From Andalucia godoyi And28 (Eukaryota > Protista > Jakobida): 64,000 nt of DNA. The notes under the pieces were generated by a model that saw nothing but the letters and a program-made list of their open reading frames with translations, ran no database searches and was not told where the DNA came from. A program made the translations under genes and the position numbers. Below, piece after piece: positions 4,161 to 45,498 of this stretch. The stretch covers positions 16,463-80,462 of the forward strand of contig VRVR01000001.1 of assembly GCA_009859145.1 (NCBI GenBank), in the 5' to 3' direction. Within the stretch, counting starts at the first letter, position 1, and the number at the start of each line of letters is the position of its first letter.

Positions 4161-5804
4161 TCAAGCGACCCGCATACCGGAAAGCTTTGCGATTGCACGA
4201 CTGACGGCATCCATGCTGTCGTAGCAGTCAAATTCCGTAATGATCGCCGACGGTCCAGCAGATTCTATCGTGGAACCTGTAGAATCGTGCGGGGTGCTGG
4301 GAGTAAAGATAAATCGACACGCTCCTGTGGGGCATCCGGCACACTGGTGCTTGTATCCGCTCCGAGGTGCATCAAATACCACTGGTTTGGTCTTGAACTT
4401 GGTCAGTTTTGTCGGCGTTCCACACCGAAAGCACGGCTGAAGCACGTTGCTTCGAGAATTCGTGTTGGTCCAACGATGTCGGCAATTTGAGCACTCAAAC
4501 AGGCCGTATCCAAACTGAACATCCACTGGCACCGCGTCATATCGAATGCAACACTTTCGACAGCGCGATACAGGCTTCTTCCCGTCCACCATTTTCCACC
4601 ACGTGAAAGTACAGGCGGGGCATCCAAACTGTCGCACTTCCTGGAATGCAGCATCGAACCGACTAAGGTTGCCGATCGTCAGGGAACTGACGTTGCGGTC
4701 CGAGCTACTGGATACACCGGATGCATTGGATGCACTCAAAGTATTGGAAGCAGTGGGAGCACGAGAAGAACGGGAGGAACGGGATGCACGGGAACTTGCG
4801 GAAGCGGCGGACGGCTGCAAAGCCGGTGTACGTGAAGCAGGACGCAGCGCATTCAAGTCAGCGGCGGGAAGCGGAATCGACATGAGGAAATGATACTGCA
4901 CATCCTGCTGAATGAATTGTCGCAAAACATCGGGAAAACTCTGGCCCATGACGGAGAACGCGCGATACAAAAACCACACATCGAGACCTGCGTATTGCAC
5001 CAATGAAACTGGAATTGGAGAGCGCGCAAAAACGTTGTTGCAGCGACGCATGACCTCATCGAAGAATGGCTTCAGCGGATGCTCCCCGCATTGTAGGTTC
5101 CTGCACATCTCTGCCAAGCCAACGTTTGCCCGTGCGGCTTCAGAGTTTTCGAAACAGTGCCTGTACAGAATTTGTGTATCGACGTAATTCTGAACGGTTG
5201 CCGAGAATGGAGCATGCGAGAGTGCCCGGATATCCGATCGACAGCCGTGAAACACCTTGAGGATGGACGGATCTTCCAAAATGCACTTCACTTCCTGGAA
5301 GATCTCCGGACGCTCCCACACATTGAATACAAACACTTGCACATCACTTGTGCACATCTGGATCAAGCACAAATCACCGCCAGGCTGTCCAAGATTCACA
5401 CCCTCGCAATCAACCGCAACCACACTCCACGGCGATGCCCGAAGTGTGTCCACGGCTGAAATCGCATCTCCCATCTCCGTAATGTGCTCGATCAGCGGCT
5501 GCGATTCAAACATGGACCAGCAGTCGGTCTCCCACGTAAGAAGACCCTCTTCTGTCTCCGGCCGAATCTTGTGCGCCCGCGTCCACCAGCGACGGACATC
5601 GCTCCACGAGACATCCGAGAAGTGTTCATGATGCTTCCAGTAGTCAAAAATCGACGTGAGTTCACGGACCACCACGGTCCGCATATCAGGATGGTCATAC
5701 AGGTGCCGGAAAAACTCATCTGCAACAAGAATCTCGCGATACGCAGCATCTGCATACGGCTGATTGCCGGCGTTCGAGTTTCGCAAACGACGCGTCTGAT
5801 TCAT
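4161..5804 (-). CDS. DEDDy 3'-5' exonuclease (EXD1/Egalitarian-like) fused to a C-terminal Shiftless (SHFL/RyDEN)-like Cys-rich domain
   Basis: 547 aa from ATG at 5804 (the track's 6113 start runs through a GA microsatellite). ExoI VAVDCEG, ExoII [9 protein letters not shown], DTQ and ExoIII YAGLDV are at about 4980-5411. The C-terminus [73 protein letters not shown] parallels the recalled SHFL sequence. Confidence 0.88.
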   Translation of the reverse strand: [547 protein letters not shown]

Positions 5805-5834: not shown

Positions 5835-5977
<143 letters not shown>

Positions 5978-6324
5978 TTTCTTTTCTCTTCTCTTTTTTC
6001 TTGTTAAAAAGACCCCCGCACAGATCGTGGTCGTAAACACTGGATGCAAGAACAACATCAAGACAAACACTGGAGACAGAAAACAGAAGACAGAAGCTAG
6101 CTCCAGCGGCCATTTGACCAGACAGGCGCTTGCGGGATCTTTTATTGTTATTATTATTTTATATATATATATATATATTTTGAATAGCAAATCCTCTCCG
6201 CAGTTTGATGGACAAGCCAGCATCCAAAGGTTGCTTTTCAACGAGCATGCACACAAATAAGAAACGGAATCAAAAAACGCAGAGTGTGCAATTATTTTTT
6301 GGATTGAATATTTTTTGTGGCTGT

Positions 6325-7503
6325 TTATACCTTCTTGTACTCGAGAGTTGTCTCGACTTTCTTAGTTTCCATGACCTTTCTGCAAGCCTTGATGAAATCC
6401 TCCTGTGTGACGTAGTCACGGTCGCCCCGAATGGCAAAATACCCGGCTTCCGTGCACACATTTCTCAAATCCGCACCGTTGCAGCCCTCTGTGAGCTTGA
6501 CGATTGCTTCGTAGTCGATCTCCTTTTCCTTTTGCACCTTGGATGCATGGATCTTGATGATTTCGAGGCGCCCCTGCTCGTTGGGCAGCGGAATCTCAAT
6601 CTTTCTGTCCAGTCGGCCTGGTCTGAGCAAGGCAGGATCCAGCACATCAGGGCGGTTGGTGGCCATGATCACCTTGACTTGTCCAAGAACATCGAATCCG
6701 TCCAGCTGGTTCAGCAGCTCCATCAGCGTTCTTTGAATTTCTCGATCTGACGACGTTCCCTCTGAAAACCTGCGGCCGCCAATTGCATCGATTTCGTCCA
6801 TAAAGATGATGCATGGTTGGTGATCCTTGGCATAACCAAACATCTCGCGGATAATGCGGGCAGATTCCCCAATGTACTTGTCGACCACAGCGGACGAGAC
6901 CACTTTCAAAAAGTTTGCGTTCATGGACCGTGCAACAGCTCTTGCAAGGAGAGTCTTTCCCGTGCCCGGTGGCCCATACAACAGCACTCCCTTCGGCGCC
7001 TTGATGCCGACGCGGACAAACAGCTCTGGGTTTGTCAGAGGCAGCTCAATGACCTCCCGCATTTCTCGAATCTGGTCCTGGAGACCTCCCACACCCGCAA
7101 ACGTCACATCGCCGGGGTCTTCCTTCAGCATGTTGTACACCATTGGGTCTACTTCGCGAGGTAGCACACGCATGATCGTGAATGTTGTCATGGCCATCTC
7201 CAGCGTAACGCGGGACCCGACCTTGATTTTCGAGCGATCGAGCTTCGGCCTGACTCCCACGACATACCGAGGGCCGGATGATGCCTTGACAATATACCGG
7301 TCCTCATCAAGCTGCCGCAGAACTTCGCCGATGATCTGCCCCACAGACTGCAGCGCCCGCAAATGGTCCTCGGTCTTGTCAAACATCTGCTTCAGAGTCG
7401 AAAGATTCTGACGCCGCTGCCTCACTTCGCCATCAATTCGACGATGCTCATTCAGCTTGTTTGTAAAGTTCTCTATTGCTCGAGTCCGCCGTTGGTCCGC
7501 CAT
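6325..7503 (-). CDS. PSMC6: 26S proteasome AAA-ATPase RPT4
   Basis: 392 aa. [19 protein letters not shown], Walker A GPPGTGKT, Walker [30 protein letters not shown] (RPT4-diagnostic) and [11 protein letters not shown]. Confidence 0.97.
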
Positions 7504-7922: not shown

Positions 7923-9083
7923 ATGGAAGACGAAGTTGTGCTGCGCGATGCATTGCTTGATTTTGCAGATCTAAAGTTCTTTTTGACAAGATGCCGAGCG
8001 GCATCGCTCGACAGGAAGACGCTCTTCGCTCGGGCCGAGACGCTGTGTCGAGAACGAAACATGTCGAAAGCATATGTCTCGCTTTGCGCGGAGCTGAATA
8101 TCACTCCGAATGCAGAGGTTGTAAACGCTGCAGAATCTGCGAACGCTGCTGCATTGAAGGAAATTGACGAGAAAATTGCAGACGCAGAGGAGAATTTGGG
8201 AGAATCCGAGGTTCGAGAGGCGTACAATGCAAAGGCAGTGCTAATGCACTTGACTGGGACAAAAGAGGAGGCTGTTGCGGCGTACAAGGCACTGTATGAA
8301 AAGACAGTGGCGCTGGGACAGCGATTCGACATTCTATTTTGCTTGATGCGAATCGGATTTGCATTTGGCGATGAAGATCTCATCAAGACGCAAATTGAAC
8401 GCGGGCACAAGCTAGTCGATGAGGGTGGAGATTGGGAACGCAGGAACAAACTGAAGGTGTACGAGGCTCTGTATTCCGCGCAACGAAGACAGTTTGCACC
8501 AGCCTCCAAGCTGTTCTTGGAGTGCGTGGCGACCTTCTCCTCCACGGAACTGATGGACTTCAAGACATTTGTCGCGTTTGTGGTCGTGACGTCGGCCATT
8601 GCTGTCGAGAGACCAGTCCTCAAGAGCAAGGTCATTGATGCCCCCGAGGTGTTACAAGCCATCGGAGAAACTGCTCACTTGCAGACATTCTTGAACTCTT
8701 TTTACGACTGCACCTACCACGAATTCTTCACAAGTTTGGTCGGTGTTTGCGACTGGATGGAACGAAGCTTCCACGTGCACGCACACGTCAATTTCTACAA
8801 TCGCGAAATGAGACTTCGTGCCTATGCGCAGTACCTCGAGTCGTACAAGTCGGTTACCTTGATCAGCATGTCAAAGTCCTTTGGTGTGTCCGAAGACTTT
8901 TTGGATCGCGACTTGTCACGAATGATTGCAGCAGGCCGCTTGCCAGCAAAAATTGACAAAGTGGCCGGATCCATCGAGACGAACCGACCTGACAGCAAGA
9001 ATGCTCTTTACAAGGACAGCATCAAACATGGAGACCAGCTGCTGAATCGCCTGCAGAGACTCTCTCGTGTTATCGACATTTAA
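7923..9083 (+). CDS. PSMD6: 26S proteasome lid subunit RPN7
   Basis: 386 aa. DEKIADAEENLGESEVREA, GGDWERRNKLKVYE, FLECVATFSSTEL, and a PCI domain ending KIDKVAGSIETNRPDSKNALY. Confidence 0.96.
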   Translation: MEDEVVLRDALLDFADLKFFLTRCRAASLDRKTLFARAETLCRERNMSKAYVSLCAELNITPNAEVVNAAESANAAALKEIDEKIADAEENLGESEVREAYNAKAVLMHLTGTKEEAVAAYKALYEKTVALGQRFDILFCLMRIGFAFGDEDLIKTQIERGHKLVDEGGDWERRNKLKVYEALYSAQRRQFAPASKLFLECVATFSSTELMDFKTFVAFVVVTSAIAVERPVLKSKVIDAPEVLQAIGETAHLQTFLNSFYDCTYHEFFTSLVGVCDWMERSFHVHAHVNFYNREMRLRAYAQYLESYKSVTLISMSKSFGVSEDFLDRDLSRMIAAGRLPAKIDKVAGSIETNRPDSKNALYKDSIKHGDQLLNRLQRLSRVIDI

Positions 9084-9221: not shown

Positions 9222-12200
9222 TCACGAAGCACTGTCCTGCATGGTTCTTGGATTCTGCTTGCAAGGACGTGTCTTGCTCAAAAAGTGCCGCTGCCACGGC
9301 CACTCGCCGTTTGGAAGCGGCTCCCGACAGAGCGGACAAGCAGCAGCAGCATTTGGGAAAGAACACGACTTTTGGTGCTTCGCGAGCTGATCCACTTGAA
9401 TGGCAAATTCACACTTGCGGCACTGGGCAAAATCATCCTTCAGTTCGCACTCGTGCAGCAAATGCTCGTTCAGCGACGCCAGCTCGACAACCTGTCCGCA
9501 CGACTGGCAAACCGTTAGCATGGGGCAATCCTGCCAATAGTGCAAATCGATCGTTTCATCTGTGAAGTCGGGACTGTGTTGTCCGCAAAACTGACAAGTC
9601 TGGGGATCGTCTTCGGGAACTTTCCACTCCTCGGAATCACGAATTGACGCATCACCCCCAGAATGAACAGCGAAATCTCCATCGGACTGACGGACGTCTG
9701 GTGACAACGCAGGATTGTGCACTTCGTCATCGTCCTGTACATCAACCGGGGGAGGAGCAACCTTCTTCGAAACGGGCTTTCGACGAGGAGAATCGGCAGC
9801 AGCAACAGCCCCATCCGACGACTTTCCGCCACTCTTTCGTGCAGGCGATTGGCCAGCGGGTTTCGCTGCGGCAGCCGTATTTCCAGATGACTTTGAAGAA
9901 TCCTTTTTCAATGGAGGTTTCGGATGCTTGTCGTTGGAAGGTTCCTCTGGCTTGCGCGACTTCCCGGGAGACGGTTGCTTCTTTGCAGGGCCTTTCCCGG
10001 ACCCCGACCATGCCACAGGCGCATTCTTGTCATGTGCAGCATGATGCTGCTCGGCAGGAAACTCGGGAAAATCTCGATCGGCACCATCCACAGAATCAAT
10101 TTCCGCAAACGCCCTTCTGATTTCGTCAACTTGCACCGGCCGAAGGGCTTCAAGGTGTGATTCGATCAAATGCGGCCCGAAAATGCGATAGACCTCGGCC
10201 AGAGTCTGGATGGAAGACTGGCGAACCTGCCCGTTTGCATGATTCAATCCATCCTTCACAATCAGCTGGACCAAATCTTTCCCAAGAGCACCTTCCTTCC
10301 GCACAAGATGGCCAAAATTCTGAAAAACAGAAACCAGCGTCGTCAGCCGCGTTCCAAGAAATCTCCAGTTTGCCTGCAGTGCTTTTGCCTGTTTTGCATT
10401 CGTTGGCAATGTTGGGTGGATCAACGCAGAGAGCACAGGCTTCGCACCAATGTACGGCAAATCGACAAGGTCCACGAGTGCAGTGGAACACGCGTCTCTC
10501 AAGCGTGCGTTAGAATCGCCCAACCGTTCCACACATTGATGCAGAAAGCTGCTCACAAAGATATCCAGGTCCACCTTGTCGCAATCCTTTCCCAGAGTGG
10601 CCAGTCCGATGCTCGTCGCGTGCACAGCGGACAATGTCACTTGCGCCATTTTGTCCGACATGGCCTTTGTACAAACCTTGTCAAGAGCCTTCAGCCTGGA
10701 TGAAGCAGCCCCAGGGATGCCGCCAAGGCAAGCCTCTACGGCACGCAACGCGCACTCTCGAAGCTGCCAAGATCCCGGGGACACAAGACATCTTGAGACG
10801 TAAGAACCGAGCACGTTCTTAATTCCATTGTAAAGTACATCGTTGGCAGCTGCCTCCTCTGCAACGGGCAGATCCGCTTGAAATCCTTTCATCTTTTTGA
10901 CAACGTCTTGTTCCCAATCTGGCAACTCGGCAAGGATCTGACTAAACGGCACCGAAGCTGTCGAGCTGGACAGCTCGTTCTTGTTTGACTTGGATTTCCT
11001 CTCAAAAGGAACACCATTGCTGGACACAACCGGGGTATCATCAATGTTTCCCGCATCGGAAAACGATGGACCCGCAAGAGCTCGAACGGGCTTCTCGTCG
11101 TGCATGTTCAAATAGCCTCCGTTGTTCGCCATGACCTTGTCTGGCGATTCTCCCCGAGCAGACATGACTGTGGACGACCGGAGCTCGTCCTCCTTATCAG
11201 AAGCTCCAAGCGGGGGTTTCGATCTTGTGGACTGCGGTGCGCCGCCAAACAATGAGCTTCGTTCATCCTCGACTTCCTGGTGCGACTTCTGCGTCGAAGT
11301 CATCGCCGTTTCTGGCACTGACGCTGGTGGTGCGGCAGACGAAGAAGATAAAGAACCATTTCGGGTTCGATCCCTACCTTGCTCATTCGCGCCCTGATGA
11401 TGAGTCTGCATAGGCTCTGTGGACTGCTGGTGTTCTCCGTGCATCCGTCCCCCGTCCTCTGGAAATGGATTCTGTCGCTTCAGTCTTCTCCGAACAGGCT
11501 TCGATGTCGGTTCTTCCGCAGTCCTTCGAATATCCTCAATCTCCTCCTTGATTCTCTTTGCGAGCTCGTAGTCCTCGCTCGCCACAGCCCGGAGTTTCCT
11601 CGTCTCCAAATCGGCAATCTTGGATCCGACGACTCGTAGACGGTCAATTGCACTTTTCAACCGGGAGGCCGTGTCATAGTCTTCTTCGGAAACGGCTTTT
11701 TCCTTCAAGTACGTGTATTCCCGAATTCGCTCGAGAGTCTTTGCGTCAAACTGGTCATTTGCAGTGTCGCCCTGTGTCATTCCGACTTTCCGCATCGGCC
11801 GCATCTGGCTGAGATCCAGCGATTCGTTGAGAGTGGATGTGTACGACCTCGTCTTCACTGGAAACGGGGTAACAACCGTCCCAAACACGGATATACCCAT
11901 CAGCGCCACTTGATTGTAAAGATTTAGCGGATTGATATGACAGCGCTGGAGCACGAGCTTCAGAGCGACGGCCCGCTCAGACGACAGCTGCACCGTCTTG
12001 AGTTCTCTGGCTTTATGTCCAGACTGGTCGTTCTTGTCCATGGAAATATACCCGAGCTTATGAACCTCCGGCTTCACAATCGCATCCACGTCGATCAAAT
12101 CGCGACTCTTCTCGTCGAATTGTGGCCGATACAAGTAGATTTCGATCCGTGTCGGGATCTTGAATTCATGTCCAAGAATCTGAATTGCATCCACCGCAAC

Positions 12201-12386
12201 TTCTCCTTCAAACGAAATGACTACTTCTTGTGGGAAATCACAAAACTTGTCGGAATGCCATCCACGAGAATCCACCGTCCGACGATGAAGCTCCGTTGCA
12301 GGACCGTCCTTGTCCTCCGAAGTCACAAAATGGATCGCATAGCTCAGCTTCGGCTTCGCTGCAGATCCTCCGCCGCTGTCAACCAT
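9222..12386 (-). CDS. CEP104: Centrosomal/ciliary-tip protein CEP104 (FAP256)
   Basis: ATG at 12386 (MVDSGG). N-terminal jelly-roll (GWHSDKFCDFPQE..GHEFKIPTRIE..LGYI..ARELK..NLYNQVAL), KEKAVSEEDYD coiled coils, TOG-like repeats, and C-terminal Zn fingers CQFCG..LDxHYWxxCPML..C..C. Confidence 0.93.
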   Translation of the reverse strand: MVDSGGGSAAKPKLSYAIHFVTSEDKDGPATELHRRTVDSRGWHSDKFCDFPQEVVISFEGEVAVDAIQILGHEFKIPTRIEIYLYRPQFDEKSRDLIDVDAIVKPEVHKLGYISMDKNDQSGHKARELKTVQLSSERAVALKLVLQRCHINPLNLYNQVALMGISVFGTVVTPFPVKTRSYTSTLNESLDLSQMRPMRKVGMTQGDTANDQFDAKTLERIREYTYLKEKAVSEEDYDTASRLKSAIDRLRVVGSKIADLETRKLRAVASEDYELAKRIKEEIEDIRRTAEEPTSKPVRRRLKRQNPFPEDGGRMHGEHQQSTEPMQTHHQGANEQGRDRTRNGSLSSSSAAPPASVPETAMTSTQKSHQEVEDERSSLFGGAPQSTRSKPPLGASDKEDELRSSTVMSARGESPDKVMANNGGYLNMHDEKPVRALAGPSFSDAGNIDDTPVVSSNGVPFERKSKSNKNELSSSTASVPFSQILAELPDWEQDVVKKMKGFQADLPVAEEAAANDVLYNGIKNVLGSYVSRCLVSPGSWQLRECALRAVEACLGGIPGAASSRLKALDKVCTKAMSDKMAQVTLSAVHATSIGLATLGKDCDKVDLDIFVSSFLHQCVERLGDSNARLRDACSTALVDLVDLPYIGAKPVLSALIHPTLPTNAKQAKALQANWRFLGTRLTTLVSVFQNFGHLVRKEGALGKDLVQLIVKDGLNHANGQVRQSSIQTLAEVYRIFGPHLIESHLEALRPVQVDEIRRAFAEIDSVDGADRDFPEFPAEQHHAAHDKNAPVAWSGSGKGPAKKQPSPGKSRKPEEPSNDKHPKPPLKKDSSKSSGNTAAAAKPAGQSPARKSGGKSSDGAVAAADSPRRKPVSKKVAPPPVDVQDDDEVHNPALSPDVRQSDGDFAVHSGGDASIRDSEEWKVPEDDPQTCQFCGQHSPDFTDETIDLHYWQDCPMLTVCQSCGQVVELASLNEHLLHECELKDDFAQCRKCEFAIQVDQLAKHQKSCSFPNAAAACPLCREPLPNGEWPWQRHFLSKTRPCKQNPRTMQDSAS

Positions 12387-12898
12387 GATCTCTCTCGCTG
12401 CTTGTATGCTATGCAATGCTATTCGGACACACACACACACAAACACAAACACAAACACGCACAAAGCAAATGAGCATAGAACTGATGATTCTGCCCTTGG
12501 TGTCCTTTAACGATTTGTGCGATACAGTGCAAGTCCAAACCTGCAATCCAACTTGATGCCTCGTCTGAAAAACTTTTGGCGCTGAATTCTTACGCGCAAA
12601 AATATAAGAAGAAAGATTTACAAATTAATACATCGATCTGAATTCGCATCAAAAGAACTAATCGATTTGCATTCTATTCGTTTGTGTTTTTATATTCTTT
12701 TGCTTCCTATTTCTCTTTTTATCTTGGTTTTCTTTTATCATCTTTCCTCCTTCTCTTTTCTTTCCTGCATAACTTGGCTCATTTCCCGCCCAAAGTCCCC
12801 AACCTCTCTCGTTCATACTTTCTTCATTTTTTTTCAAAGTGAATTTCTTTTTTTCTCCTTCCTTCCCTTTCTGATTTCCCCGCCCTTCCGTGTCTGCT

Positions 12899-16475: not shown

Positions 16476-18845
16476 ATGATCCGGAGGTGGTTTTCGCAGC
16501 AAGCGTGCCAACTGGAGCATTCTCTGAGCCCAGATTGGTACAAATGGAACTCATACTATGTGCGTCGATTGGAATCCTTTTTGGAATTTCAAAAGGAGCA
16601 TGCGGAACGGACCGCCGAGGTGAAATCCGCGGCGGTCGGTGCAACGGTCCCGATCCGTATCTCGTATGAGGGTTGCAAAGACTCTGTTGTTGTGGACGCT
16701 CCATTGTTCGAGTCTTCGCCTATGACGCTGTTCAAACAGGTGCAAAGTCAGCTGTTCCCGGATACGAAGCCCGCCGAAGAGCATTGTTTGCTGGCGCAGA
16801 TCAATCGGTCATCCTGGATCGACGCTTATCGTCCATTGGAGCCAAAGCTTATGGAATCTGCAAGGGGAGGAGCAGGAAATGCAAATGGCATCACAAGCAT
16901 TACAATGTATCCGCTGTCGGCGTCGAACCCAATGACACGGGATCATTTCTGGCACTCAGCAGCGCATTTGCTTGGGCAGACCATAGAGCGGTTCTATGCG
17001 TCTCCTTCGAGTAAACTGACCGTCTACCTGGACGATGGACCACCAGTCGAACATGGATTCTTCTATGACTATTCGCTGGTGGATGCACGCGGATCGGTCG
17101 TTGCCGAGGCTCTTTCCCCCAAGGACGACCTGCCGCAGATGCAAAAAATCCTCGGCCATTTGTGCACTCCGCCGAAAGGATCTGCTGGTGACCGGTTTGA
17201 GAGAATCGAAGTGACGAAGCGCCAAGCCGAAGTCTGCTTCCGCGGAAATCCGCACAAGGAAAGGATTTTGCAGCGACTCGGCGACGATGCCTCCATCACG
17301 CTGTACCGCTGCGGTGCTTTCGTGGACTTGTGCAGAGGACCACATGTCCCCATGACATCTCAGATCAAGATTGGGAAGGTTGTCAGTGCATCGGCAGTAA
17401 TGAATGCATCGCAGCGCGTGTATGGAATTGCCTTTCGAAGCAAGACAGAATCAGATGTGTACGAAGCTGTTCGACAAGAAGCGGAAAAGCGAGATCATCG
17501 CATTATCGGGAAGCAGCAAAGGTTGTTCATGTTTCATCCCACAAGCCCGGGATCGGCGTTCTTCCTGCCACATGGGATGCGGATATTCATTGCGTTGCAG
17601 GAGATGTTGCGCGCGGAATACAGACGGAGAGGCTATTCAGAGGTGCTCACTCCAATTCTGTTTTCCTCGGCGCTGTGGAAGCAGTCTGGCCATTGGGATT
17701 TCTACAAGGAAGACATGTTCTTTTTGAAGGGCGGTGACGCGGAAGAGCATGATGCGACCCCGACATCGCTGGATCATGCGCGCAAGTCGCAGCACAAACA
17801 CCCGCCTCCTCCGCAGTTGCCAGAGGGCCGCGACGCTTGCTGCGCAGATGTTTCCAACGGAACCGTTGCAGATGCCGAGGTGACAGGTCTCAAGCCAATG
17901 AACTGTCCGTCACATTGCTTGATCTTTGCCTCGCACAGCCGCTCTTACCGCGATTTGCCGATGCGATTGGCGGACTTTTCTCCTCTTCACAGAAACGAAC
18001 CTTCTGGCTCGCTTTCCGGCCTGACGCGTGTTCGGAGATTCCACCAGGACGACGCCCACATCTTTTGCAGACCCGATCAGATCTCATCGGAAATTCAGTC
18101 TTGTCTGGAATTTGTCCTCTCGGTTTATTTGCGACTGGGTTTCAATGTTGATCGAGACATTACGTTTCGGTTGTCTACACGGCCGGAGAAGTTTGTAGGA
18201 GACTCGGCACTATGGGACACTGCGGAATCGACGCTACAAGGCGTGCTTGAAGGCCTTGGCAAGCACTGGGTTGTTGCGGAAAAGGATGGTGCATTCTACG
18301 GTCCAAAGATTGATATCTTGCTTCGAGATGCTCTAGGAAGGATGCATCAGTGTGGAACAGTGCAGCTTGATTTCCAACTCCCTCGTCGCTTCAATCTGTC
18401 CTACACTGATGAGCATGACCAACCCGTGATTCCCGTGATGGTCCACCGGGCGATTCTAGGATCGTTCGAGCGTCTTCTCGGGGTTCTTACAGAGCATCTG
18501 GGTGGGAAATGGCCGTTGTGGATGTCCCCTCGCCAAGTCGTTGTGCTTCCCATCAGCCAACAGTACGAAAGTTATGCTCGCGACGTAGCAAAGACGTTGA
18601 TGAACGATTCTGGAGACAAAATTCGATGGGTCGAAGTCGATGCGAGAGACGAGACTCTGAATAAGCGCGTTCGAGATGCTCAGACAAGCCAGACAAATTA
18701 TATCCTCGTTGTGGGGGCTCAGGAGCTTGAGCATAAATCTGTGCATGTGCGACACCGCGCCCGCGGAGTTTTGGGGTCTCTCCCCCTGCCTACTGCACTC
18801 AGCGTCATTACTTCGGAAATTGACTCGTTCGATACCAATGTTTAG
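16476..18845 (+). CDS. TARS: Threonyl-tRNA synthetase, likely organelle-targeted
   Basis: 789 aa. Editing domain HSAAHLLG and DLCRGPHV, RDHRIIG, LKPMNCP, RNEPSGSLSGLTRVRRFHQDDAH, GAFYGPKID, QLDFQLP and HRAILGSFER, plus the anticodon domain. MIRRWFSQ presequence-like start. Confidence 0.96.
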   Translation: MIRRWFSQQACQLEHSLSPDWYKWNSYYVRRLESFLEFQKEHAERTAEVKSAAVGATVPIRISYEGCKDSVVVDAPLFESSPMTLFKQVQSQLFPDTKPAEEHCLLAQINRSSWIDAYRPLEPKLMESARGGAGNANGITSITMYPLSASNPMTRDHFWHSAAHLLGQTIERFYASPSSKLTVYLDDGPPVEHGFFYDYSLVDARGSVVAEALSPKDDLPQMQKILGHLCTPPKGSAGDRFERIEVTKRQAEVCFRGNPHKERILQRLGDDASITLYRCGAFVDLCRGPHVPMTSQIKIGKVVSASAVMNASQRVYGIAFRSKTESDVYEAVRQEAEKRDHRIIGKQQRLFMFHPTSPGSAFFLPHGMRIFIALQEMLRAEYRRRGYSEVLTPILFSSALWKQSGHWDFYKEDMFFLKGGDAEEHDATPTSLDHARKSQHKHPPPPQLPEGRDACCADVSNGTVADAEVTGLKPMNCPSHCLIFASHSRSYRDLPMRLADFSPLHRNEPSGSLSGLTRVRRFHQDDAHIFCRPDQISSEIQSCLEFVLSVYLRLGFNVDRDITFRLSTRPEKFVGDSALWDTAESTLQGVLEGLGKHWVVAEKDGAFYGPKIDILLRDALGRMHQCGTVQLDFQLPRRFNLSYTDEHDQPVIPVMVHRAILGSFERLLGVLTEHLGGKWPLWMSPRQVVVLPISQQYESYARDVAKTLMNDSGDKIRWVEVDARDETLNKRVRDAQTSQTNYILVVGAQELEHKSVHVRHRARGVLGSLPLPTALSVITSEIDSFDTNV

Positions 18846-22631: not shown

Positions 22632-25600
22632 TTACAAAGGCGTGACGGCAGACAATAATCTTTCGAAACGGACGCGCTCATCAACAACCTGTCGCAGAAC
22701 CGTTGTTACGGCATCAATGGACTTGGTTTTCAGGGCAGCTTCGATCTCTGCACCAATCTTCGAAACAACGTGTTCCGCGGACTCCCCTTCCTCGGTTGGC
22801 AGAACAGGAGGCAGTGACGACACCGTGGGCTCCGGCAGTGCGTCGTCAACTCCCTCTTCCTCATCGGAAAAGGCAAAGAGATCCTCCAGTTCCGCAGGAG
22901 AGATCTGCAGAATAGATAACACTGAATCGTCAATCTTGCGAATCGTCTCTGCAGATCCGGCAACAGACGACGAGCGCTTGGACGACGATCGCTTCCTGGT
23001 GCTTCCTCTAGACTTTCGATCATACAATGTGTGCTCGGCCTGCTGCTGCTGCTGACTGCGCCGCAAATTCTTCGCTTCCTTGGATGCAGCCATGAGACGC
23101 GACGCTTGTTCCGAGACAAACTTGCGAATGACAGCCTTCCATCGCTCATGGGCATGGTCCACCGTGGCCTTGGCTACCTTGAGGGCTTCTTGGGTGGAGA
23201 CGAGCTGCTTCTCAAGGTTCTCTTTCTGCTGCTGCAAAGCCTCGGAATGCTCTGATTTGACCTTTTGTATATTCAAGAAGGATTCCTTGCGAGAAAGATC
23301 TTCCCGCGCACGCCTCGCCTTGTCAGCAGCCTCGTCTCGCTCCGCCTGTGTTTTCGACAGCTCTGCTTCGAGATTCTCCAGCTTGCTCTTGAGCACCTTC
23401 ATTTGAGTGTCGCGACGAGACAGGTCGTCTCGAAGCTTCTTTATCGCTTCGTCGTCTTTGGAAGACGATGCACCGCTGGATCCGGTCGCCACAGCTGTCG
23501 TCACAGACGAGGATTTCTCTAGCTTGTGCTTCAGCACATCCATCGCTTCCAATTTTCGAGCAAGTTCGGCTTTCAGAGTCTTGACCGAGTCCTTCAGTTT
23601 TGCAATTTGCTCTTCATATCCGGACTGCTTCGCGTTAAATTCCTTGGTTTTTGCATCCAGCTCTTGCTGAATCTCCTTGGTGCTGTCAGAGCCACGTGCT
23701 CGCATCGCTCGTTCACGATCCGCTGCTGCCTTCGACTCAGACAATGCAGCATCGAGTTTCTTCATCGTGACATTCAACAACGCAACTTCGCCATCCTTGT
23801 CAGAAAGCGCCTTCTTGGCTGCGTCAAGCTCCTTTTGCAAGGTCCTCATTGTTCCCGATTTCTTATCTCTTGCGGCCTCCCACTTTGCCTTTTCCTCGTC
23901 AAGATCCGCAACTTTCTTGACAACCGCAGAGTGTTCTGCCTCCTTCTCTCGCAACTTCGTGCGATTCGCCTGCAGCTCAGTCTCCAGCATTGCAATTCGC
24001 GAGTGGAGCCTTGCTTTCACAGAATCCTCCTTTTCCCGATACGACTCCCACTCGTTCTTCAATTTCTCAAGAGCAACCTGTCGGTGCGTGTCTACTTCAT
24101 CGCGGAGCTTTGCAATTGCAGAATCCATCTGCGAACGCGTTGAGAATTCCGTTTCGGAAGCACGACGATCACGATCCATCAGTTCCTTTTTCAAATACGA
24201 AATTCTGGATTCGAACTCCAACTTCTCCGTCTCGTGCGTAGCAAGCAACTGTGCGACCTCGGCCTTGAAATTTCGAATAAGGCTGTCTTTCTCGCGTGCA
24301 AACGAATCCACGGCATCCTGCAGGTCCGCTACTTGGTCTAGCCATTCTTTCTTTTCCGTTGCAAACTCCGCCCGAAGCTTGTCCGTCACACTCGTGGCGG
24401 CACTCAGCTTCTGCTCCAACTCCGCATTTCGCAGCTGAGATTTTTGAACAGATTCCTTTAACGACGATTCTTCCGCACCGGCAACCGTACATTGCGCATC
24501 TTTGTCCGCAACTGCGGCTTTCACGGTCTGGCAGCTCGTGGCTGCATGGGAATGCCGCTCGGTTTGGACCCCAGACTCCGCGTAAGACCGCAGCTCTGCC
24601 GCAGCGGCTGCCACAGATCCAATAATAGACGTTCCAGAAACACCCATCATTAGGCGCATGTCAGACAGCTTCTTTCGCAACAAATTGTTCTCACTTTCCA
24701 ACCGAGACACATCCTCCACGGCAGTGATTGACATGAGCGACGCAGAAACAGACGCAGAACTTGCCGACGACGCAGCAGATCGATGTGCCTTGACAGAGCC
24801 GGTCGCGGACGTCGAGGTCGACCGGCTCGACAACGGCACATCTGCCCCATGACCATTTTCCCGTAATTCACGAATGCGTTCATCCCGTTGGCTCAGCACT
24901 TGGCGAAGCTTGCTGACCTCTCTCTCCGCCGACTTCCATTTGGTCAGCGCATTGGCTTCCGCAATACGGGCAGAAGCAAGTTGTTTGGCCCACGATTCCT
25001 TATGGACGGTCACTGGTCCGCCACCAGAAGACACGGTACTTCCACCACCTTGAGACGCAAATGACTCCAGCGATTGGGTAAGCTTCTGCATCGCGAGATC
25101 CATGATGCCAATTTGCTCGCCCTTTTCTTCGGACTCGGACTGGAGCGTGTGGAGTTGTCGGGACAGTTTCCCAATCTCTCGCTGTGCTTCTTCGACAAGA
25201 ACACCACGTTCACGAAGAGTTCGTCGGAGCTCGTCAATTTCTCGCTGGAGATCATGTCGATCTGACTCATGCCGCTCTGATATCCGTGCCATGTCCGCAA
25301 GGTGCGATTCATTGCTTTCCTTCAGAGCCCTCTGAGAACTAGCTTCCAATTCGTCACGCTTTCTTCTGAACTCCTCCTGCGCATCCTTCAGCTTCTTTGA
25401 GACCGTGTCCGAAACCTGCTGTTCCAAATACTGTTCCAACACCTTGGTTTTCTCACGTTCTGCCTCCAGAATGGAACGAAGGACTTGGACTTCACGGAAG
25501 GATACAGAATCGATGCGTGCAGTGATCATCTCCATCATAGCGTCCGATTCTGGAGCAGAGTCCCCGACTGGAATGGATGACGCTGCCGGCGCATTCATGG

Positions 25601-28427
25601 AAACGGACGAATAGTCCGCAACTGAAGATGATGCTGCGGCATCCATGCTCAGGCTCGTGCTCTGACCACTCAGCTTTGCCAACATGGGGTCACATTCCCC
25701 AAACTGGCGCTGCTGCTGCTGTTGCTGCTGCATCGACAAGTTCAAAATGTTTCTCACTTGAGAAAGCTCCGATATCAGCGCATCACGCTCACGTTGCACA
25801 GACTTCATCTTATCCAGCAGGATGCGAGATGCTAGCTTCTCCGATGCAAGCTCCAAGGTGAGCTCCTTCTGGCTCTTGGTGACTCGACACATCTCTTTTA
25901 CGGACTCCTGCAGTTGCTCCTCGAATCGTCGCCAATCTCGTGCAGAATCAAGTGCCGACTCCGCAGCTCTCTTTTCCGCTTCGGACTCGTATCGCACGGC
26001 AAGATTCTTGATGTTGTTCTCCAACTTCTGAAGAGACAGTGTGCGATTGTTGAGCTCGGATTGCAGGAATCGAATTTGCGTGGACATTCTGCCCAAGTCC
26101 GCATTTCGTAAAGCATTGTGCGACATCAATTCTGTATTGCGCTTAACTAAGGATTCGTTCAGAGCAACAAGATCGCTCAGGTGCGACTGCGAATCCTGAA
26201 TCAGTCCAACAACTTGTGCCTCAGCAAGAGCTCGTAGTCGTGTATCTGTAAAGGCGTCCCGCTTCGACTTTGAGGAGGAAGACGACGAAGACGACGAAGA
26301 CCGCTCGTGACCAGAGTCCAAAGAAAAGTGCTGCAATGCGTGGGCAAGCTCGTCCTTCTCCAGCTTGATCGTGGTCTTTTCCCGGCTGAGCCTCTGCAAT
26401 TCCAAACGCGTGTCGTGATTGTGACGCTCCCAGACTTCGAACTTGCTTCTGAGTTCCGAGCGAAGCAAGTCTCGCTCTGTCTTGGTGGAATCGAGCTCGA
26501 CCAGCACCTCGAGATGCTCGTGTCGAACGGCTTCGAGTTCCAGCTTCAGAGATAAGGCATCGTTCATTGCGCGGTCTCGCTCCTCTTTGCGCAGAGACTC
26601 GCTCCTTTGAGACTGCAAGCGCATGGCTTCGGCAGCAAGAAGCTGACCACAAATGCGCACCATGTCCTCGTGAACAAGCATTGACTCTTCGGAGAGTGGA
26701 TCGCGCTGCATGGAGGCAATCGTGTCGACCATCACATTATTCTGAACTTTCAGTTCCTCGATCTGCGACAATGCATTTTCTAGCGGAGTCATGTACTGCA
26801 GCTCCAGCTCATTTCTGATCCGAGCTTTATGATGATCCAGAATGTGGGACCATCGAATCTCAAGATTTTCCACAGTCAACGACGCATTACATAGCTGCAA
26901 CTTTGGGGGGCTGTCGGCTGCATCGCTGTTCTGCGACGGCAGCACCATGGATTCCGTCGGCCGCATTGTCTTTTCCTTCTCCAGCTCGCCAATACGCTCT
27001 CTTGCATTGAGATACTCTTTCTCGAGCTTTGCATACGATTCCACAATCGTCGCATGATCCGAAACCGCGGACGCCAGCTTCTCATGGGCCTCCCTCAGCT
27101 CTTGATTCGTACGCTTGAGGTCCTCAATCCGAGCATCGCGCTCGTCCACCATCAACGACAAGGTTGCAATCATTTCCGAGTCTGCAGCCTTGGACGACGC
27201 AGACTGCGCCTCAGGAGCCGAAGCGGCCCCAGATACTGCGCTTGTCAGCGGTCTGTCTGTGCTGGAAGATAGGGCCCTCTTCTCCAAGCTTTGAATTCTG
27301 TGCTCCATCTTCTTCATACGATCCAGATGAAGTTCATTTTCAGCCCTCAGTCTGGCGGAGCACATTCTTTCCGCTAACAATTCATCTGCCATTTGAGCAA
27401 GATCCGCGTGCATGACTGTTCGCTTGGACAGCTGAGATTTGGCCTCCTCCAGAGTTCTGATCTTCACCGAATTCATTTCTCGTGCTTGCTTAAGCTCCAG
27501 TTCTGAACGATCGTATTCTCTCTGCAGCATCACCAGACGGTCCTGCAAATCATGCTCACGCACCGAGGACTTTTCGCGTATGTCCGACATTTGCATACGC
27601 AGCCGCAGAATCTCGCTCTCGAAGTCGGCGGTGGTGATTCCAAAATCTGACTGACAGGCTTGATTTTTGATTTTTCTCTTCTTGTTCGAGCCAGATTTCT
27701 TCTCTTCTTCTTCTTTCTGAAGGACCACGCTTTGGGCAGAACGTAGCAGCTCCTCCAGTTTGTACACTCTCGATTTCAGTTGTGCAATGTAGGCATCCTT
27801 GGCATCGTTTTCTGCGATCTTCTCAAGCGTCATATCCAAATCAGCCTCGAGTTTAGCATTCTTGCGCACCAGCACATCATAGCCCGCAACATCACTCTTG
27901 AATTTGCTCAATTGCCGATCCAATTCCGCAATGTGGGTTTGCCGAGACGATACTTCGTTCTGCAGCATCGAACACAGCTCCCGTTCCTTCTCCAGCGATA
28001 TCTCAAGCCGGCTATTTTCCGTCTTGAAATGCTCAACCTCACTTTTCAATTTCTTCAGAGAGTCGATTTCCGCATCCTTTTCCACAAGCAGCGCCAGCAC
28101 TCTTTGCGATTTCCTTTCAAAATCTGCGCGTTCTTCTGCCAACATGAGATCAACAAGCTGCTTCACCTGCGTGTGCTTATCCAGCTGAACATGCTTGTAC
28201 TGCTCAAGATGCGAAACCTGCGACTGCAAATTATCGACCAGCTCAGAAAGCCGAGTATTCTCTTTGCGAAGCGACTCTTCAACTGGAGATCTTTCAGACG
28301 AGTAGGATGGTGCGGATACTGGTGCTGGAGGAGCTGGAGGAGGGGGAGGAGGAGGAGGGGGACCAGCAGAAGGAGGAGGCGTCCGAGCCGCGCCAGTCTT
28401 CTTTCCCGGACCCGAACTTTCCAACAT
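22632..28427 (-). CDS. Giant coiled-coil centriolar protein, centlein-like
   Basis: 1931 aa uninterrupted heptad-rich ORF with an N-terminal poly-Pro tract. VDLMLAEERADFERKSQRVLALLVEKDAEI and C-terminal VLSILQISPAELEDLF resemble recalled centlein motifs. The CDS is secure; the identity is tentative. Confidence 0.6.
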   Translation of the reverse strand: MLESSGPGKKTGAARTPPPSAGPPPPPPPPPAPPAPVSAPSYSSERSPVEESLRKENTRLSELVDNLQSQVSHLEQYKHVQLDKHTQVKQLVDLMLAEERADFERKSQRVLALLVEKDAEIDSLKKLKSEVEHFKTENSRLEISLEKERELCSMLQNEVSSRQTHIAELDRQLSKFKSDVAGYDVLVRKNAKLEADLDMTLEKIAENDAKDAYIAQLKSRVYKLEELLRSAQSVVLQKEEEEKKSGSNKKRKIKNQACQSDFGITTADFESEILRLRMQMSDIREKSSVREHDLQDRLVMLQREYDRSELELKQAREMNSVKIRTLEEAKSQLSKRTVMHADLAQMADELLAERMCSARLRAENELHLDRMKKMEHRIQSLEKRALSSSTDRPLTSAVSGAASAPEAQSASSKAADSEMIATLSLMVDERDARIEDLKRTNQELREAHEKLASAVSDHATIVESYAKLEKEYLNARERIGELEKEKTMRPTESMVLPSQNSDAADSPPKLQLCNASLTVENLEIRWSHILDHHKARIRNELELQYMTPLENALSQIEELKVQNNVMVDTIASMQRDPLSEESMLVHEDMVRICGQLLAAEAMRLQSQRSESLRKEERDRAMNDALSLKLELEAVRHEHLEVLVELDSTKTERDLLRSELRSKFEVWERHNHDTRLELQRLSREKTTIKLEKDELAHALQHFSLDSGHERSSSSSSSSSSKSKRDAFTDTRLRALAEAQVVGLIQDSQSHLSDLVALNESLVKRNTELMSHNALRNADLGRMSTQIRFLQSELNNRTLSLQKLENNIKNLAVRYESEAEKRAAESALDSARDWRRFEEQLQESVKEMCRVTKSQKELTLELASEKLASRILLDKMKSVQRERDALISELSQVRNILNLSMQQQQQQQRQFGECDPMLAKLSGQSTSLSMDAAASSSVADYSSVSMNAPAASSIPVGDSAPESDAMMEMITARIDSVSFREVQVLRSILEAEREKTKVLEQYLEQQVSDTVSKKLKDAQEEFRRKRDELEASSQRALKESNESHLADMARISERHESDRHDLQREIDELRRTLRERGVLVEEAQREIGKLSRQLHTLQSESEEKGEQIGIMDLAMQKLTQSLESFASQGGGSTVSSGGGPVTVHKESWAKQLASARIAEANALTKWKSAEREVSKLRQVLSQRDERIRELRENGHGADVPLSSRSTSTSATGSVKAHRSAASSASSASVSASLMSITAVEDVSRLESENNLLRKKLSDMRLMMGVSGTSIIGSVAAAAAELRSYAESGVQTERHSHAATSCQTVKAAVADKDAQCTVAGAEESSLKESVQKSQLRNAELEQKLSAATSVTDKLRAEFATEKKEWLDQVADLQDAVDSFAREKDSLIRNFKAEVAQLLATHETEKLEFESRISYLKKELMDRDRRASETEFSTRSQMDSAIAKLRDEVDTHRQVALEKLKNEWESYREKEDSVKARLHSRIAMLETELQANRTKLREKEAEHSAVVKKVADLDEEKAKWEAARDKKSGTMRTLQKELDAAKKALSDKDGEVALLNVTMKKLDAALSESKAAADRERAMRARGSDSTKEIQQELDAKTKEFNAKQSGYEEQIAKLKDSVKTLKAELARKLEAMDVLKHKLEKSSSVTTAVATGSSGASSSKDDEAIKKLRDDLSRRDTQMKVLKSKLENLEAELSKTQAERDEAADKARRAREDLSRKESFLNIQKVKSEHSEALQQQKENLEKQLVSTQEALKVAKATVDHAHERWKAVIRKFVSEQASRLMAASKEAKNLRRSQQQQQAEHTLYDRKSRGSTRKRSSSKRSSSVAGSAETIRKIDDSVLSILQISPAELEDLFAFSDEEEGVDDALPEPTVSSLPPVLPTEEGESAEHVVSKIGAEIEAALKTKSIDAVTTVLRQVVDERVRFERLLSAVTPL

Positions 28428-30171: not shown

Positions 30172-31710
30172 TTAGCGAGCCATCTGATGAACGACAATCG
30201 CTGCCTCCACCAATCCCCTTCCGTTCGTCGCACCCAATTCGGAACGCTTCTTGCGCGGTGCCTGGTTGACCACCATGAGTGGGTTGGCACGGTTCATGAC
30301 ATCTTCGTTGACTGAGACCCCGTCCAAGTACTCCTTCAGCATGGCCTTCAAAGAACCGTTTTCCTCGACAAGCCGAGTGCGCTCTTCTTCCAGCGCCATC
30401 TTATCCAGCGTAACCTTGTTCAGTCGCTTGTAGAATCCTTCAAGCGGTGCAAGAATTCCATCGTAATCAACAGAGGTGACTGCACCGTCAAGCTGCAGGA
30501 CTTGCACACCATCCACGGACGTTTCGACGGATGTTTGAGGCACGAGTCCACCACCATCTGCAATGACTTGCTCACGCGCCAGGGCTTCTTCGTCTCCATT
30601 GAGATTGGTCTTGTAAAACGGAATAACCTTCTCCCGCTCCGTCTCCAGTTTTGCATTCATTTCGACGAGCCGCAAGATTCGATCACCTTGTGCAACGCGA
30701 TCCTCCAACACCTTGATCGTCTTGTGAGCATTCGAGACGAGTTCCGCAATGTGCTTCCTTTCGCTTTCCCGGAACCGATTCATGTGCTCCTTCAGATCCT
30801 TCAGATGCCGCAGAATGTTCTCCTTTTCGGCACGCAGCGTCGTGTTGCGCACTTCGCCATCACGAACAGCATTCGCAAGTTTTGCTTTCCAATGCGCGAG
30901 TTGTTCTTGCAGTCTTTGGATTTTCCGCATCTGCGTGTCAATTGTCTTTGCGGTTTCCTGGTCCTGAGACATCAGATTCTGGTACTCCTTCAGAGTGCCT
31001 TCTGTAGCTGCGGTATACGCATCGTGCTCCTCCTGCATGCGATGTCTGTATTCCTCGATAATCTTTTCAAGCGTGATCTTGAGAACCGTGTACTCCTCTG
31101 TGTTCTTGTTCTTCAAATCGTCACGCTGCGTGCTAAACTCTTGTTTCATCTCATCTTCGGCTGATTCATGCTCCTTCTTCATCGCAGCAATAATGTCTTC
31201 GATTTCCTGCTTCTCGTCCTCGTTTTTCCGGATAATCCCCTTTCGTTCTTCATCAAACTCAATCTGCAAATCATGCAACTGCACTTCAAACTCTCGCTCA
31301 AAGTCCGAAATCCGCTCTCGATGCAGCGCAATCAATGCATCCACGTTCTGTAAATGCGTCCGAAGCGTCATCCTGTACTGTTCCTCCGCCTCATCCAAGT
31401 CCGCAAGTAACATGCTGAGAATTGCATCTTTGCGATCCACCTGTCGATCATGTTGCTGCGCAAGAACTTCAATCTGCTTCTTCAGCTCAATCGTCTTTGC
31501 CTCACGCATCTTATCTCTCCAGAAATTCTCAATAAGCTTCGCATTCACCGCAGACAACTTTGTCTCCTCTTCCAACTTTTGCAAAAGCCGAATCCGATTC
31601 CACTCCTCCTTCTTCTTCGCCTCCTCCTCCGCCTTCAAAGCATCAACCTCCAGAGAAAGGCCATCTTTTACCTTTGCAGATCCTTTAACCTTCTTTCCAG
31701 CTTTCGGCAT
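30172..31710 (-). CDS. CCDC65: Nexin-dynein regulatory complex subunit DRC2
   Basis: 512 aa coiled coil. WRDKMREAKTIELKKQIEVLAQQHDRQVDRKDAIL..DLDEAEEQY..HLQNVDALI, ETEREKV.PF, FYKRLNKV.LD and LKEYLDGVSVNEDV..NPL.VVN. Confidence 0.92.
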   Translation of the reverse strand: MPKAGKKVKGSAKVKDGLSLEVDALKAEEEAKKKEEWNRIRLLQKLEEETKLSAVNAKLIENFWRDKMREAKTIELKKQIEVLAQQHDRQVDRKDAILSMLLADLDEAEEQYRMTLRTHLQNVDALIALHRERISDFEREFEVQLHDLQIEFDEERKGIIRKNEDEKQEIEDIIAAMKKEHESAEDEMKQEFSTQRDDLKNKNTEEYTVLKITLEKIIEEYRHRMQEEHDAYTAATEGTLKEYQNLMSQDQETAKTIDTQMRKIQRLQEQLAHWKAKLANAVRDGEVRNTTLRAEKENILRHLKDLKEHMNRFRESERKHIAELVSNAHKTIKVLEDRVAQGDRILRLVEMNAKLETEREKVIPFYKTNLNGDEEALAREQVIADGGGLVPQTSVETSVDGVQVLQLDGAVTSVDYDGILAPLEGFYKRLNKVTLDKMALEEERTRLVEENGSLKAMLKEYLDGVSVNEDVMNRANPLMVVNQAPRKKRSELGATNGRGLVEAAIVVHQMAR

Positions 31711-38109: not shown

Positions 38110-38538
38110 GCTCTGTTTGCGTTAGAAACTCAAAAAACCACACTGTGAGTAAAGAAGCGAAGAAGAAAAGAAAAGAAAAGTCATTTATATATATATATAT
38201 AGTGGGTGTGTGTATGTGGATTGTCTTCTGGCTGTTGTTTGGATGGTATGATTTTTGAAACAGATGTGGAATCTGCGTTTTCAAACCCTGCTGTAGTGCT
38301 TCGACGGTTGGGGTTTGCTTTCTTTGCACTTACTGTTTTCTGTCGTTTTTTGCCTTTTTCCCTTCATTCCTTTCTTCATTTCCTTCTTTTGTTTTTGGTT
38401 TTTTGTTTGTTCAATCGATCGTTCTTCTATATCTTATTTTTCATATATTTTTTTTAATCATTTAAAATTGCTTGGATTGATATTCATTGGTTTTGATTTT
38501 TATATACTTTCTTCTTCTTCTGTTGGTTGTTTTGCAGA

Positions 38539-45400: not shown

Positions 45401-45464
45401 AACAACAGAACAACAGAACAACAGAACAACAGAACAACAGAACAACAGAACAACAAAACAACAG
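45401..45464. repeat. 8-bp tandem repeat (AACAACAG) x8
   Basis: Eight units, one variant (AACAACAA), between ATG 45397 and ATG 45499. Confidence 0.95.
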
Positions 45465-45498
45465 AGAAGAAGGCAGCGTGCAGCCAGGAATCTGGGGA

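Follow-up and report, generated by a model that had tools for sequence, protein, structure and literature searches.

We analysed a 64,000-nt stretch of the genome of the jakobid Andalucia godoyi (Discoba; assembly GCA_009859145.1), hereafter called the window, in which position x corresponds to position x+16,462 of contig VRVR01000001.1. Its minus strand carries an uninterrupted open reading frame (ORF) of 547 codons (4161–5804, with the ATG at 5804 and the stop codon at 4161–4163, as given by the ORF list and a check of the translation). The predicted protein joins a DEDDy-type 3'-5' exonuclease domain, by way of a low-complexity linker, to a zinc-finger module of the Shiftless (SHFL/UPF0515) family. 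The original prediction, made from the letters of the sequence, had placed both domains in a single ORF of a protist, and they were indeed found there. That the fusion is genuine, a nuclear A. godoyi gene with one exon and a two-module product, we regard as virtually certain.

The gene was modelled as a complete single-exon coding sequence of 547 codons plus stop (4161–5804), based on the ORF list, the translation and a start shared with the closest relative (P0002, see below). A longer ORF of 650 amino acids (aa) starting at 6113 was rejected, as its 103 extra codons are a read-through of a (TC)n/(GA)n microsatellite. This noncoding repeat (5839–5994; 78.5 copies with 91% matches, identified by Tandem Repeats Finder and from the sequence) lies 35 bp upstream of the start codon, and the open frame across it yields a spurious "RERERE" N-terminal extension. 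The 547-aa model was preferred because the start of P0002 coincides with the ATG at 5804. An intronless gene is in keeping with the published description of the A. godoyi genome (PMC7050145; accession VRVR00000000), which is ~20 Mb in size and whose genes are for the most part, by a vast majority, intronless. Introns were absent in 88% of the 864 nuclear genes, for candidate mitochondrial proteins, that were characterised in that study; the gene described here is not mentioned in it. No second copy of either the nuclease module or the SHFL module was detected within the 64 kb, and an Rfam scan of the window returned no match.

Domain composition of the fusion protein

The C-terminal module (residues 370–547; 4164–4697, on the minus strand as are all features of this gene) comprises a helix, three zinc fingers (ZF1–ZF3), a Ser/Thr loop and a C-terminal helix. 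It belongs to the SHFL/UPF0515 family, in a shortened form without the N-terminal domain of the animal proteins. The Pfam profile PF15135 (UPF0515) matched residues 369–514 through profile positions 82–251 of 271 (E = 7.5e-25, 88.3 bits compared to a gathering cut-off of 29.8). A sequence search of the PDB aligned residues 376–493 with residues 88–210 of human Shiftless (9kbo_A, E = 1.9e-16). In an AlphaFold2 (AF2) model of the protein, built on a 36-sequence alignment, the predicted local distance difference test (pLDDT) score was 84–97 over residues 380–510 and 94–97 for ZF1 and ZF2. When the model was compared to the PDB using Foldseek, three chains of 9KBO ranked first (E-values from 6e-10 to 2e-9, 32–34% identity over ~170 columns). 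The Cys-rich domain that had been likened to SHFL motif for motif is thus a true homologue rather than an unrelated zinc ribbon. The module is basic, with an isoelectric point (pI) of 9.2.

In the alignment with 9kbo_A, each of the 12 zinc ligands of Shiftless has a corresponding residue in the A. godoyi protein. ZF1 is a CCCC finger formed by C395, C398, C415, and C418 (4551–4622), which correspond to human C112, C115, C132, and C135. ZF2 is likewise a CCCC finger, with C438, C441, C458, and C461 (4422–4493) at the positions of human C155, C158, C174, and C177. ZF3 is an HCCC finger (H486, C488, C491, and C496; 4317–4349) matching H203, C205, C210, and C223 of the human protein, all human ligands being those assigned in the structure of Shiftless (PMC12716391). 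The spacing of ZF3 is tighter than in the human protein (H-x-C-x2-C-x4-C versus H-x-C-x4-C-x12-C).

Human Shiftless also contains a buried "hyperphosphorylation loop", in which phosphorylated T250 is clasped by K127, R138, and H244 (PMC12716391). Its equivalent in the A. godoyi protein is a Ser/Thr loop that runs from S503 to residue 515 (4260–4298) and was recovered as a second HMMER stretch against 9kbo_A. In this stretch, H506, S511, T512, and S515 were aligned to human H244, S249, T250, and T253, respectively. A predicted clasp is formed by K410, R421, and H506 at the positions of human K127, R138, and H244.

The conservation of these residues was assessed across the 85 family members that cover the whole SHFL domain. 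The eight cysteines of ZF1 and ZF2 were kept in 84–85 members and the ZF3 ligands in 62–63, the remainder being gapped as a result of differing spacing. K410 was kept in 82 members, R421 in 74 (as R or K), and H506, S511, and T512 in 80 each. Judged by these counts, the predicted clasp is a family signature as much as the zinc sites are, which suggests that phosphorylation-dependent folding is old. Matches to the 3CxxC profile PF17180 that remained below threshold (19–24 bits, cut-off 27) were found for ZF2 (residues 433–464, 4410–4508) and for three relatives (P0003, P0009, and P0094), and the Shiftless fingers may be distantly related to 3CxxC zinc ribbons.

The module thus shares with human Shiftless (SHFL, also C19orf66, RyDEN, or IRAV; 9KBO) the helix before ZF1, the CCCC ligands of ZF1 and ZF2, the HCCC ligands of ZF3, the Ser/Thr loop, and the clasp. 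The region corresponding to residues 164–199, which a short inactive human isoform lacks, is present as well. In contrast, the N-terminal helical bundle of the human protein (residues 1–101) is absent except for its last helix: the PF15135 match sets in only at position 82 of the 271-position profile, no second match to this profile was found in residues 1–368 at E ≤ 1, and the AF2 model has a single helix (residues 377–386) before ZF1. Apart from the bundle and the spacing of ZF3, the A. godoyi protein differs in having no Glu-rich tail, in being fused to a nuclease where the human protein stands alone, and in belonging to a protist host without an interferon system. The proposed equivalence to SHFL therefore holds for the zinc-finger core and the Ser/Thr loop, but not for the N-terminal bundle or for human W191, which is not conserved.

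The nuclease module, a DEDDy 3'-5' exonuclease domain of the Egalitarian/RNase D type, spans residues 111–310 (4875–5474) and is acidic (pI 5.0). The Pfam profile PF01612 (DNA_pol_A_exo1) matched residues 118–285 (E = 3.5e-19, 69.7 bits, gathering cut-off 23.6). The top nuclease match in the PDB sequence search was Drosophila Egalitarian (residues 127–281, 60.7 bits, E ~1e-15), with the runner-up family at 28.8 bits and WRN at ~17–18 bits. The pLDDT score was ~85–90 over residues 111–310, and in the Foldseek search with the AF2 model Egalitarian ranked next after the 9KBO chains, followed by the RNase D of T. brucei and E. coli, NrnC, Nibbler, Rrp6, EXD2, and WRN. E-values ranged from 3e-9 to 1e-5 for the Egalitarian, RNase D, NrnC, Rrp6, and WRN folds. 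The domain had been labelled EXD1/Egalitarian-type in the original prediction. Egalitarian is the closest solved relative, but "Egalitarian/RNase D-type" is the more accurate label because EXD1 was only a distant match in the PDB sequence search (E = 0.066).

According to its structure paper, the catalytic pentad of Egalitarian consists of D561, E563, D621, Y704, and D708. The HMMER alignment to Egalitarian revealed a complete pentad in the A. godoyi protein: D132, E134, D191, Y271, and D275 (D-x-E, D, and Y-x3-D). The Exo I motif D132-C-E134 (5403–5411) is aligned with D561 and E563 and is kept in the three other fusion sequences described below (P0002, P0069, and P0003). The Exo II aspartate D191 (5232–5234), part of the string HGCRSD, is aligned with D621, and the Exo III motif Y271-AGL-D275 (4980–4994) with Y704 and D708; both are kept in all fusion proteins. 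The DCE, HGCRSD, and YAGLD strings read earlier as DEDDy motifs were all located where they had been placed, and the translation was checked.

The relation to Egalitarian (9UJU, 9RVY) extends to the fold and the pentad, and Egalitarian was the closest solved relative of both the A. godoyi nuclease and that of the amoebozoan fusion protein from Balamuthia mandrillaris (76 bits), with every other solved nuclease family at ≤35 bits. Egalitarian itself, however, has ~1000 residues and no SHFL module. Besides the nuclease it carries LOTUS-like domains at its N-terminus, a region that binds BicD, a dynein-light-chain motif, and, following the nuclease, a basic helical domain. These extra parts were not detected in the fusion proteins, whose N-terminal regions had no Pfam or PDB sequence match, and the alignment of the Balamuthia nuclease ends at Egalitarian residue 742, before the basic linker helix of Egalitarian. 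Because none of the other parts of Egalitarian were detected, we describe the nuclease as nearest to Egalitarian and do not call the protein an Egalitarian orthologue.

Between the two modules lies the Ser/Arg/Ala-rich linker noted previously (residues 321–369; 4698–4844), which is predicted to be disordered (pLDDT 34–44). It comprises 49 residues, 21 of them Ser or Thr (43%), and has a pI of 12.0. The linker of P0002 is Arg/Ser/Gly-rich and also has a pI of 12.0, while that of Balamuthia is of low complexity, Asn/Gly/Arg-rich, and acidic (pI 5.2). The N-terminal region of the A. godoyi protein (residues 1–110; 5475–5804) contains helices predicted at low confidence (pLDDT 37–64). It matched no Pfam family and was conserved with P0002 only.

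Relatives and distribution of the fusion

The occurrence of the fusion was surveyed by a word-indexed search, an exhaustive profile search, phmmer, a Pfam analysis of ten longer family members, a metagenome scan complemented by tblastn, and a scan of viral contigs. The word-indexed search yielded four relatives: two fusion proteins (P0002 and P0003) and two SHFL-only proteins. P0002 is 550 aa long, is 44% identical to the A. godoyi protein, and has the same two Pfam domains; it originates from a contig (L002) of the Logan assembly of SRR22388075, and a near-identical copy (P0069) was found on a JGI contig. P0003 is a 655-aa protein of Balamuthia mandrillaris (Amoebozoa) in which both domains recur in unchanged order, encoded by an intronless gene on JAVKOQ020000168.1 (6001–7968 of locus L001). 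Its NCBI product name, "RNA helicase", looks wrong, as judged by its Pfam content: the only matches were to PF01612 and PF15135, and no helicase domain was found. The same collinear architecture was thus observed in three lineages. The fusion proteins share 31–45% overall identity, yet the pentad is kept in all of them.

The exhaustive search with a profile of the SHFL module covered 1.84 billion representative proteins and returned 358 members at E ≤ 1e-3, of which the best 150 were examined. Members carrying a name were animal Shiftless proteins of echinoderms, amphioxus, and molluscs. A phmmer search with the nuclease region among 202 fetched family members detected the nuclease only in the A. 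godoyi protein, P0002/P0069, and P0003, and the ten longer SHFL-family members had no other Pfam domain. Four metagenome loci carried the SHFL module alone. In three of them (L004, L006, and L007), no nuclease domain was found in the ~1.8–2.2 kb available upstream of the module; in the fourth (L005), the SHFL match lies ~200 bp from the contig start, making this locus uninformative about an upstream nuclease. No SHFL relative was found in the viral contigs scanned. The best 50 matches in a library of predicted viral structures were to the nuclease module only, the best being exonucleases of Pandoravirus and Medusavirus.

The stand-alone short SHFL-like proteins (P0004, P0006–P0010, and P0080, one of them from MMETSP) were 41–47% identical to the SHFL module of the A. 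godoyi protein. Like this module, they lack the animal N-terminal bundle; unlike the A. godoyi protein, they have no nuclease. In a distance tree based on 162 columns of the SHFL domain, the fusion proteins grouped with these short protist forms, apart from the animal proteins. Bootstrap support was 97/100 for the pair of the A. godoyi protein and P0002, 35/100 for the protist-type core clade, and 5/100 for a clade consisting of fusion proteins only. That the nuclease domains of both Andalucia and Balamuthia are of the Egalitarian type would weakly favour a single origin of the fusion, with repeated losses, over several origins. The small number of fusion relatives can be attributed to the isolation of the A. 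godoyi lineage, for which the threonyl-tRNA synthetase encoded in the window provides a measure (best non-self matches 44–49% identical). The original prediction of a pre-metazoan SHFL homologue is plausible in view of the occurrence of the fusion in Discoba and Amoebozoa, although horizontal transfer is an alternative.

The N-terminal part of the Balamuthia protein (residues 1–170; 6001–6510 of L001) is composed of two modules of ~75 aa that share the motif W-P-x-(W/Y), usually followed by R. This twin module also heads two proteins (P0077 and P0078; phmmer E-values of 4e-10 and 1.5e-17) in which the SHFL module is present and the nuclease absent. The twin modules had no Pfam or PDB match, and a single-sequence AF2 model of the Balamuthia N-terminus reached a pLDDT of 44; a fold resembling the LOTUS-like domains of Egalitarian may be suspected for them. 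Two further family members, P0079 (463 aa) and P0125 (474 aa), contain three or four tandem SHFL-like stretches, with Pfam recognising three stretches in P0079 (E = 1e-64). N-terminal regions of ~90 aa are alike among Shiftless homologues of echinoderms and amphioxus (P0011–P0017, P0022, P0025, P0028, P0082, and P0086).

Neighbouring genes

The window is filled with long ORFs free of interruptions, among them genes for ciliary and proteasome proteins. The strand alternates from gene to gene, on which ground a kinetoplastid origin of the DNA was rejected. A 26S proteasome AAA ATPase of the Rpt type (6325–7503, minus strand) and RPN7 (7923–9083, plus strand) face each other head to head, their starts ~420 bp apart, and they may share a bidirectional promoter. 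Four ciliary genes were found within the 64 kb: CEP104 (9222–12464, minus strand), the gene of a protein with an NYD-SP28 domain (PF14772, "Sperm tail"; 30172–31710, minus strand), ODAD1 (38527–40794, plus strand), and a dynein heavy chain (52512–63995, minus strand). The N-terminal end of the latter probably lies beyond the window, as its DHC_N1 profile match starts at position 474 of 562.

The threonyl-tRNA synthetase gene (16476–18845, plus strand) encodes a protein with a long N-terminal extension and without the TGS domain (PF02824) that is common in eukaryotic homologues. A 745-aa ORF (35872–38109, minus strand) matched the ligand-binding domain of neurotransmitter-gated ion channels (PF02931, E = 1.9e-8) and, on the strength of this match, would give this jakobid a protein akin to Cys-loop receptors. 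A separate exonuclease gene of the RNase T type (DEDDh, PF00929; 34861–35748, plus strand) is unrelated to the nuclease of the fusion. Two ORFs, one of 1931 aa (22632–28427, minus strand) and one of 674 aa (45397–47421, plus strand), had no Pfam match at E ≤ 1e-5.

Possible function and significance

RNase D/Rrp6-type DEDDy domains take nucleotides off the free 3' ends of RNA and depend on accessory domains to bind the substrate. The nearest solved relatives of the fusion nuclease act on RNA or bind it (Egalitarian, RNase D, Rrp6, NrnC, and Nibbler). RNase D, Rrp6 (EXOSC10), and NrnC, which share the fold and the Exo I–III motifs with it, are active enzymes that trim or degrade RNA at its 3' end and whose accessory domains, such as HRDC and PMC2NT, bind the substrate. 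A functional analogy is proposed between these accessory domains and the SHFL module. The fusion protein differs from these enzymes in its weak sequence similarity to them (E-values from 4e-6 to 0.05) and in having an SHFL core instead of HRDC or PMC2NT. For the zinc-finger region of human Shiftless (SFL), association with the ribosome has been reported, as has RNA binding with nanomolar affinity, for which the phospho-loop is required.

We favour, with a probability of roughly 55%, an RNA-directed 3'-5' exonuclease in which the SHFL module would serve as the targeting arm. The basic zinc-finger module would bind RNA, possibly in association with ribosomes, and once bound it would hold the acidic nuclease on that RNA and raise the local nuclease concentration there. 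The flexible, basic Ser/Arg-rich linker of ~50 residues would tether the two modules while the nuclease trims or degrades the bound RNA from its free 3' end. The protein would then be an enzyme of targeted RNA decay or surveillance.

Several observations weigh against this interpretation. No confident packing between the modules was predicted by AF2 (predicted template modelling score of 0.45), and the neighbouring genes, being housekeeping and ciliary, offer no hint of function. In the human protein, the N-terminal bundle holds R13, R16, and H20 of basic pocket 1, as well as K10 and R14, which bind phosphorylated S256. The A. godoyi module lacks the bundle residues for basic pocket 1 and for the phospho-loop contacts, and its binding may therefore differ from that of human SFL. 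In addition, human R97, R136, and W191 are replaced by A385, C419, and V475, respectively; W191 is part of a "bridge" needed for the restriction of processing bodies (P-bodies; PMC12987661). As for the nuclease, mutating all five of the presumed catalytic residues of Egalitarian left its binding of RNA and its function in vivo unaffected. Because Egalitarian keeps a pentad that is dispensable, conservation of the pentad is not proof of catalysis, and an active nuclease, as assumed in the original prediction, is not supported by the presence of the five residues.

The behaviour of Egalitarian raises the main alternative, a non-catalytic, bipartite RNA-binding adaptor, in which the nuclease domain would provide an RNA-binding surface only. 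Jointly with the SHFL zinc fingers, it would recognise particular RNAs and, instead of degrading them, act in their localisation, storage, or translational control. This alternative draws on the position of Egalitarian as the closest solved relative of both the Andalucia and the Balamuthia nucleases, and on the pentad mutant that still binds RNA and functions in vivo. We nevertheless consider it unlikely, as the pentad is invariant among three proteins at 31–45% identity, Pfam and PDB sequence comparison detected neither the region that binds BicD nor the LOTUS-like domains nor the basic helical domain that follows the nuclease in Egalitarian, and the authors of the Egalitarian structure consider residual exonuclease activity likely. 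An enzyme directed to DNA is less likely still and, in our estimate, rather remote: the DEDDy domain would work at 3' ends of DNA, as in WRN or EXD2, with the zinc fingers binding DNA in repair or replication. PF01612 does include DNA exonucleases, WRN and EXD2 were among the weaker sequence and structure matches, and the top viral structural matches were giant-virus DEDDy exonucleases and polymerase proofreading domains. The best matches are, however, RNA-associated by a wide margin (60.7 bits for Egalitarian compared to ~17–18 bits for WRN), and the zinc-finger family has a single characterised member, which binds RNA. An artefact, by which neighbouring genes were merged through a chance open frame, a misassembly, or contamination from a non-axenic culture, has a negligible probability. 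A stop-free low-complexity stretch of 49 codons could arise by chance, but the same order, continuity of frame, and type of linker were found on the Logan contig, on the JGI contig, and in the Balamuthia genome, and the 551,635-bp contig of A. godoyi carries the eukaryotic dynein, proteasome, and CEP104 genes.

Shiftless restricts many RNA and DNA viruses as well as retroviruses by a mechanism that is disputed. Inhibition of frameshifting, premature termination, RNA destabilisation, and effects on P-bodies have all been proposed. A special case of the targeted exoribonuclease is an antiviral sensor-effector, as put forward in the original prediction: the SHFL module would find frameshifting or stalled ribosomes, or viral RNA, the nuclease would destroy the RNA, and the antiviral function of the human protein would be ancestral. 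The SHFL homology includes the zinc fingers and the phospho-loop that human SFL needs to bind the frameshift RNA signal. Human SHFL has also been linked to the destabilisation of viral RNA, for which an attached nuclease would be a simple route. Against this, nothing in the sequence or the gene surroundings points to viruses or ribosomes, so that neither the sensing of frameshifting, stalled ribosomes, or viral RNA nor an antiviral role finds support there. Also missing is the helical bundle, which in the human protein contributes to the basic pocket, and its absence makes a simple transfer of the human function uncertain. No jakobid virus is documented in the literature searched, there is no interferon-type induction, and no SHFL-like protein was found in the viral contigs or among the best 50 viral structure matches. 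We therefore regard this special case as improbable.

No description of a fusion of SHFL and a nuclease, or of Shiftless outside animals, was found in the literature searched, in agreement with the earlier impression that the architecture had not been described. It is undescribed rather than hidden: both domains appear in public Pfam annotations, and the Balamuthia protein is available in NCBI. A structural study of Shiftless published in 2025 placed its conservation "from zebrafish to humans" and reported "few hits" in a fold search (PMC12716391). The case made here rests on three sequences from little-studied organisms.

A broader scenario, which we consider doubtful, would make the SHFL module an ancient means of RNA surveillance in eukaryotes, shared by Discoba, Amoebozoa, and animals. 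It would first have directed an Egalitarian/RNase D-type 3'-5' exoribonuclease to its targets, and animal Shiftless and Egalitarian would be the separated descendants of this arrangement. If this were true, the protist fusion would show the original effector mechanism behind an interferon-stimulated factor, namely direct 3'-5' decay of the bound RNA, and a partnership between SHFL and a DEDDy exonuclease would be predicted in animals.

For the family, the comparison extends the zinc-finger and phospho-loop core of Shiftless, treated in the papers searched as a vertebrate or animal protein lacking informative relatives, to a jakobid, an amoebozoan, and many protists, and it defines the minimal conserved core of SHFL. 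It likewise brings protists into the discussion of the Egalitarian-type nuclease domain, which had been confined to animals. By "Rosetta stone" logic, the fusion of the two modules in three organisms makes 3'-5' RNA decay a candidate partner activity of SHFL and a new lead on how this family may act.

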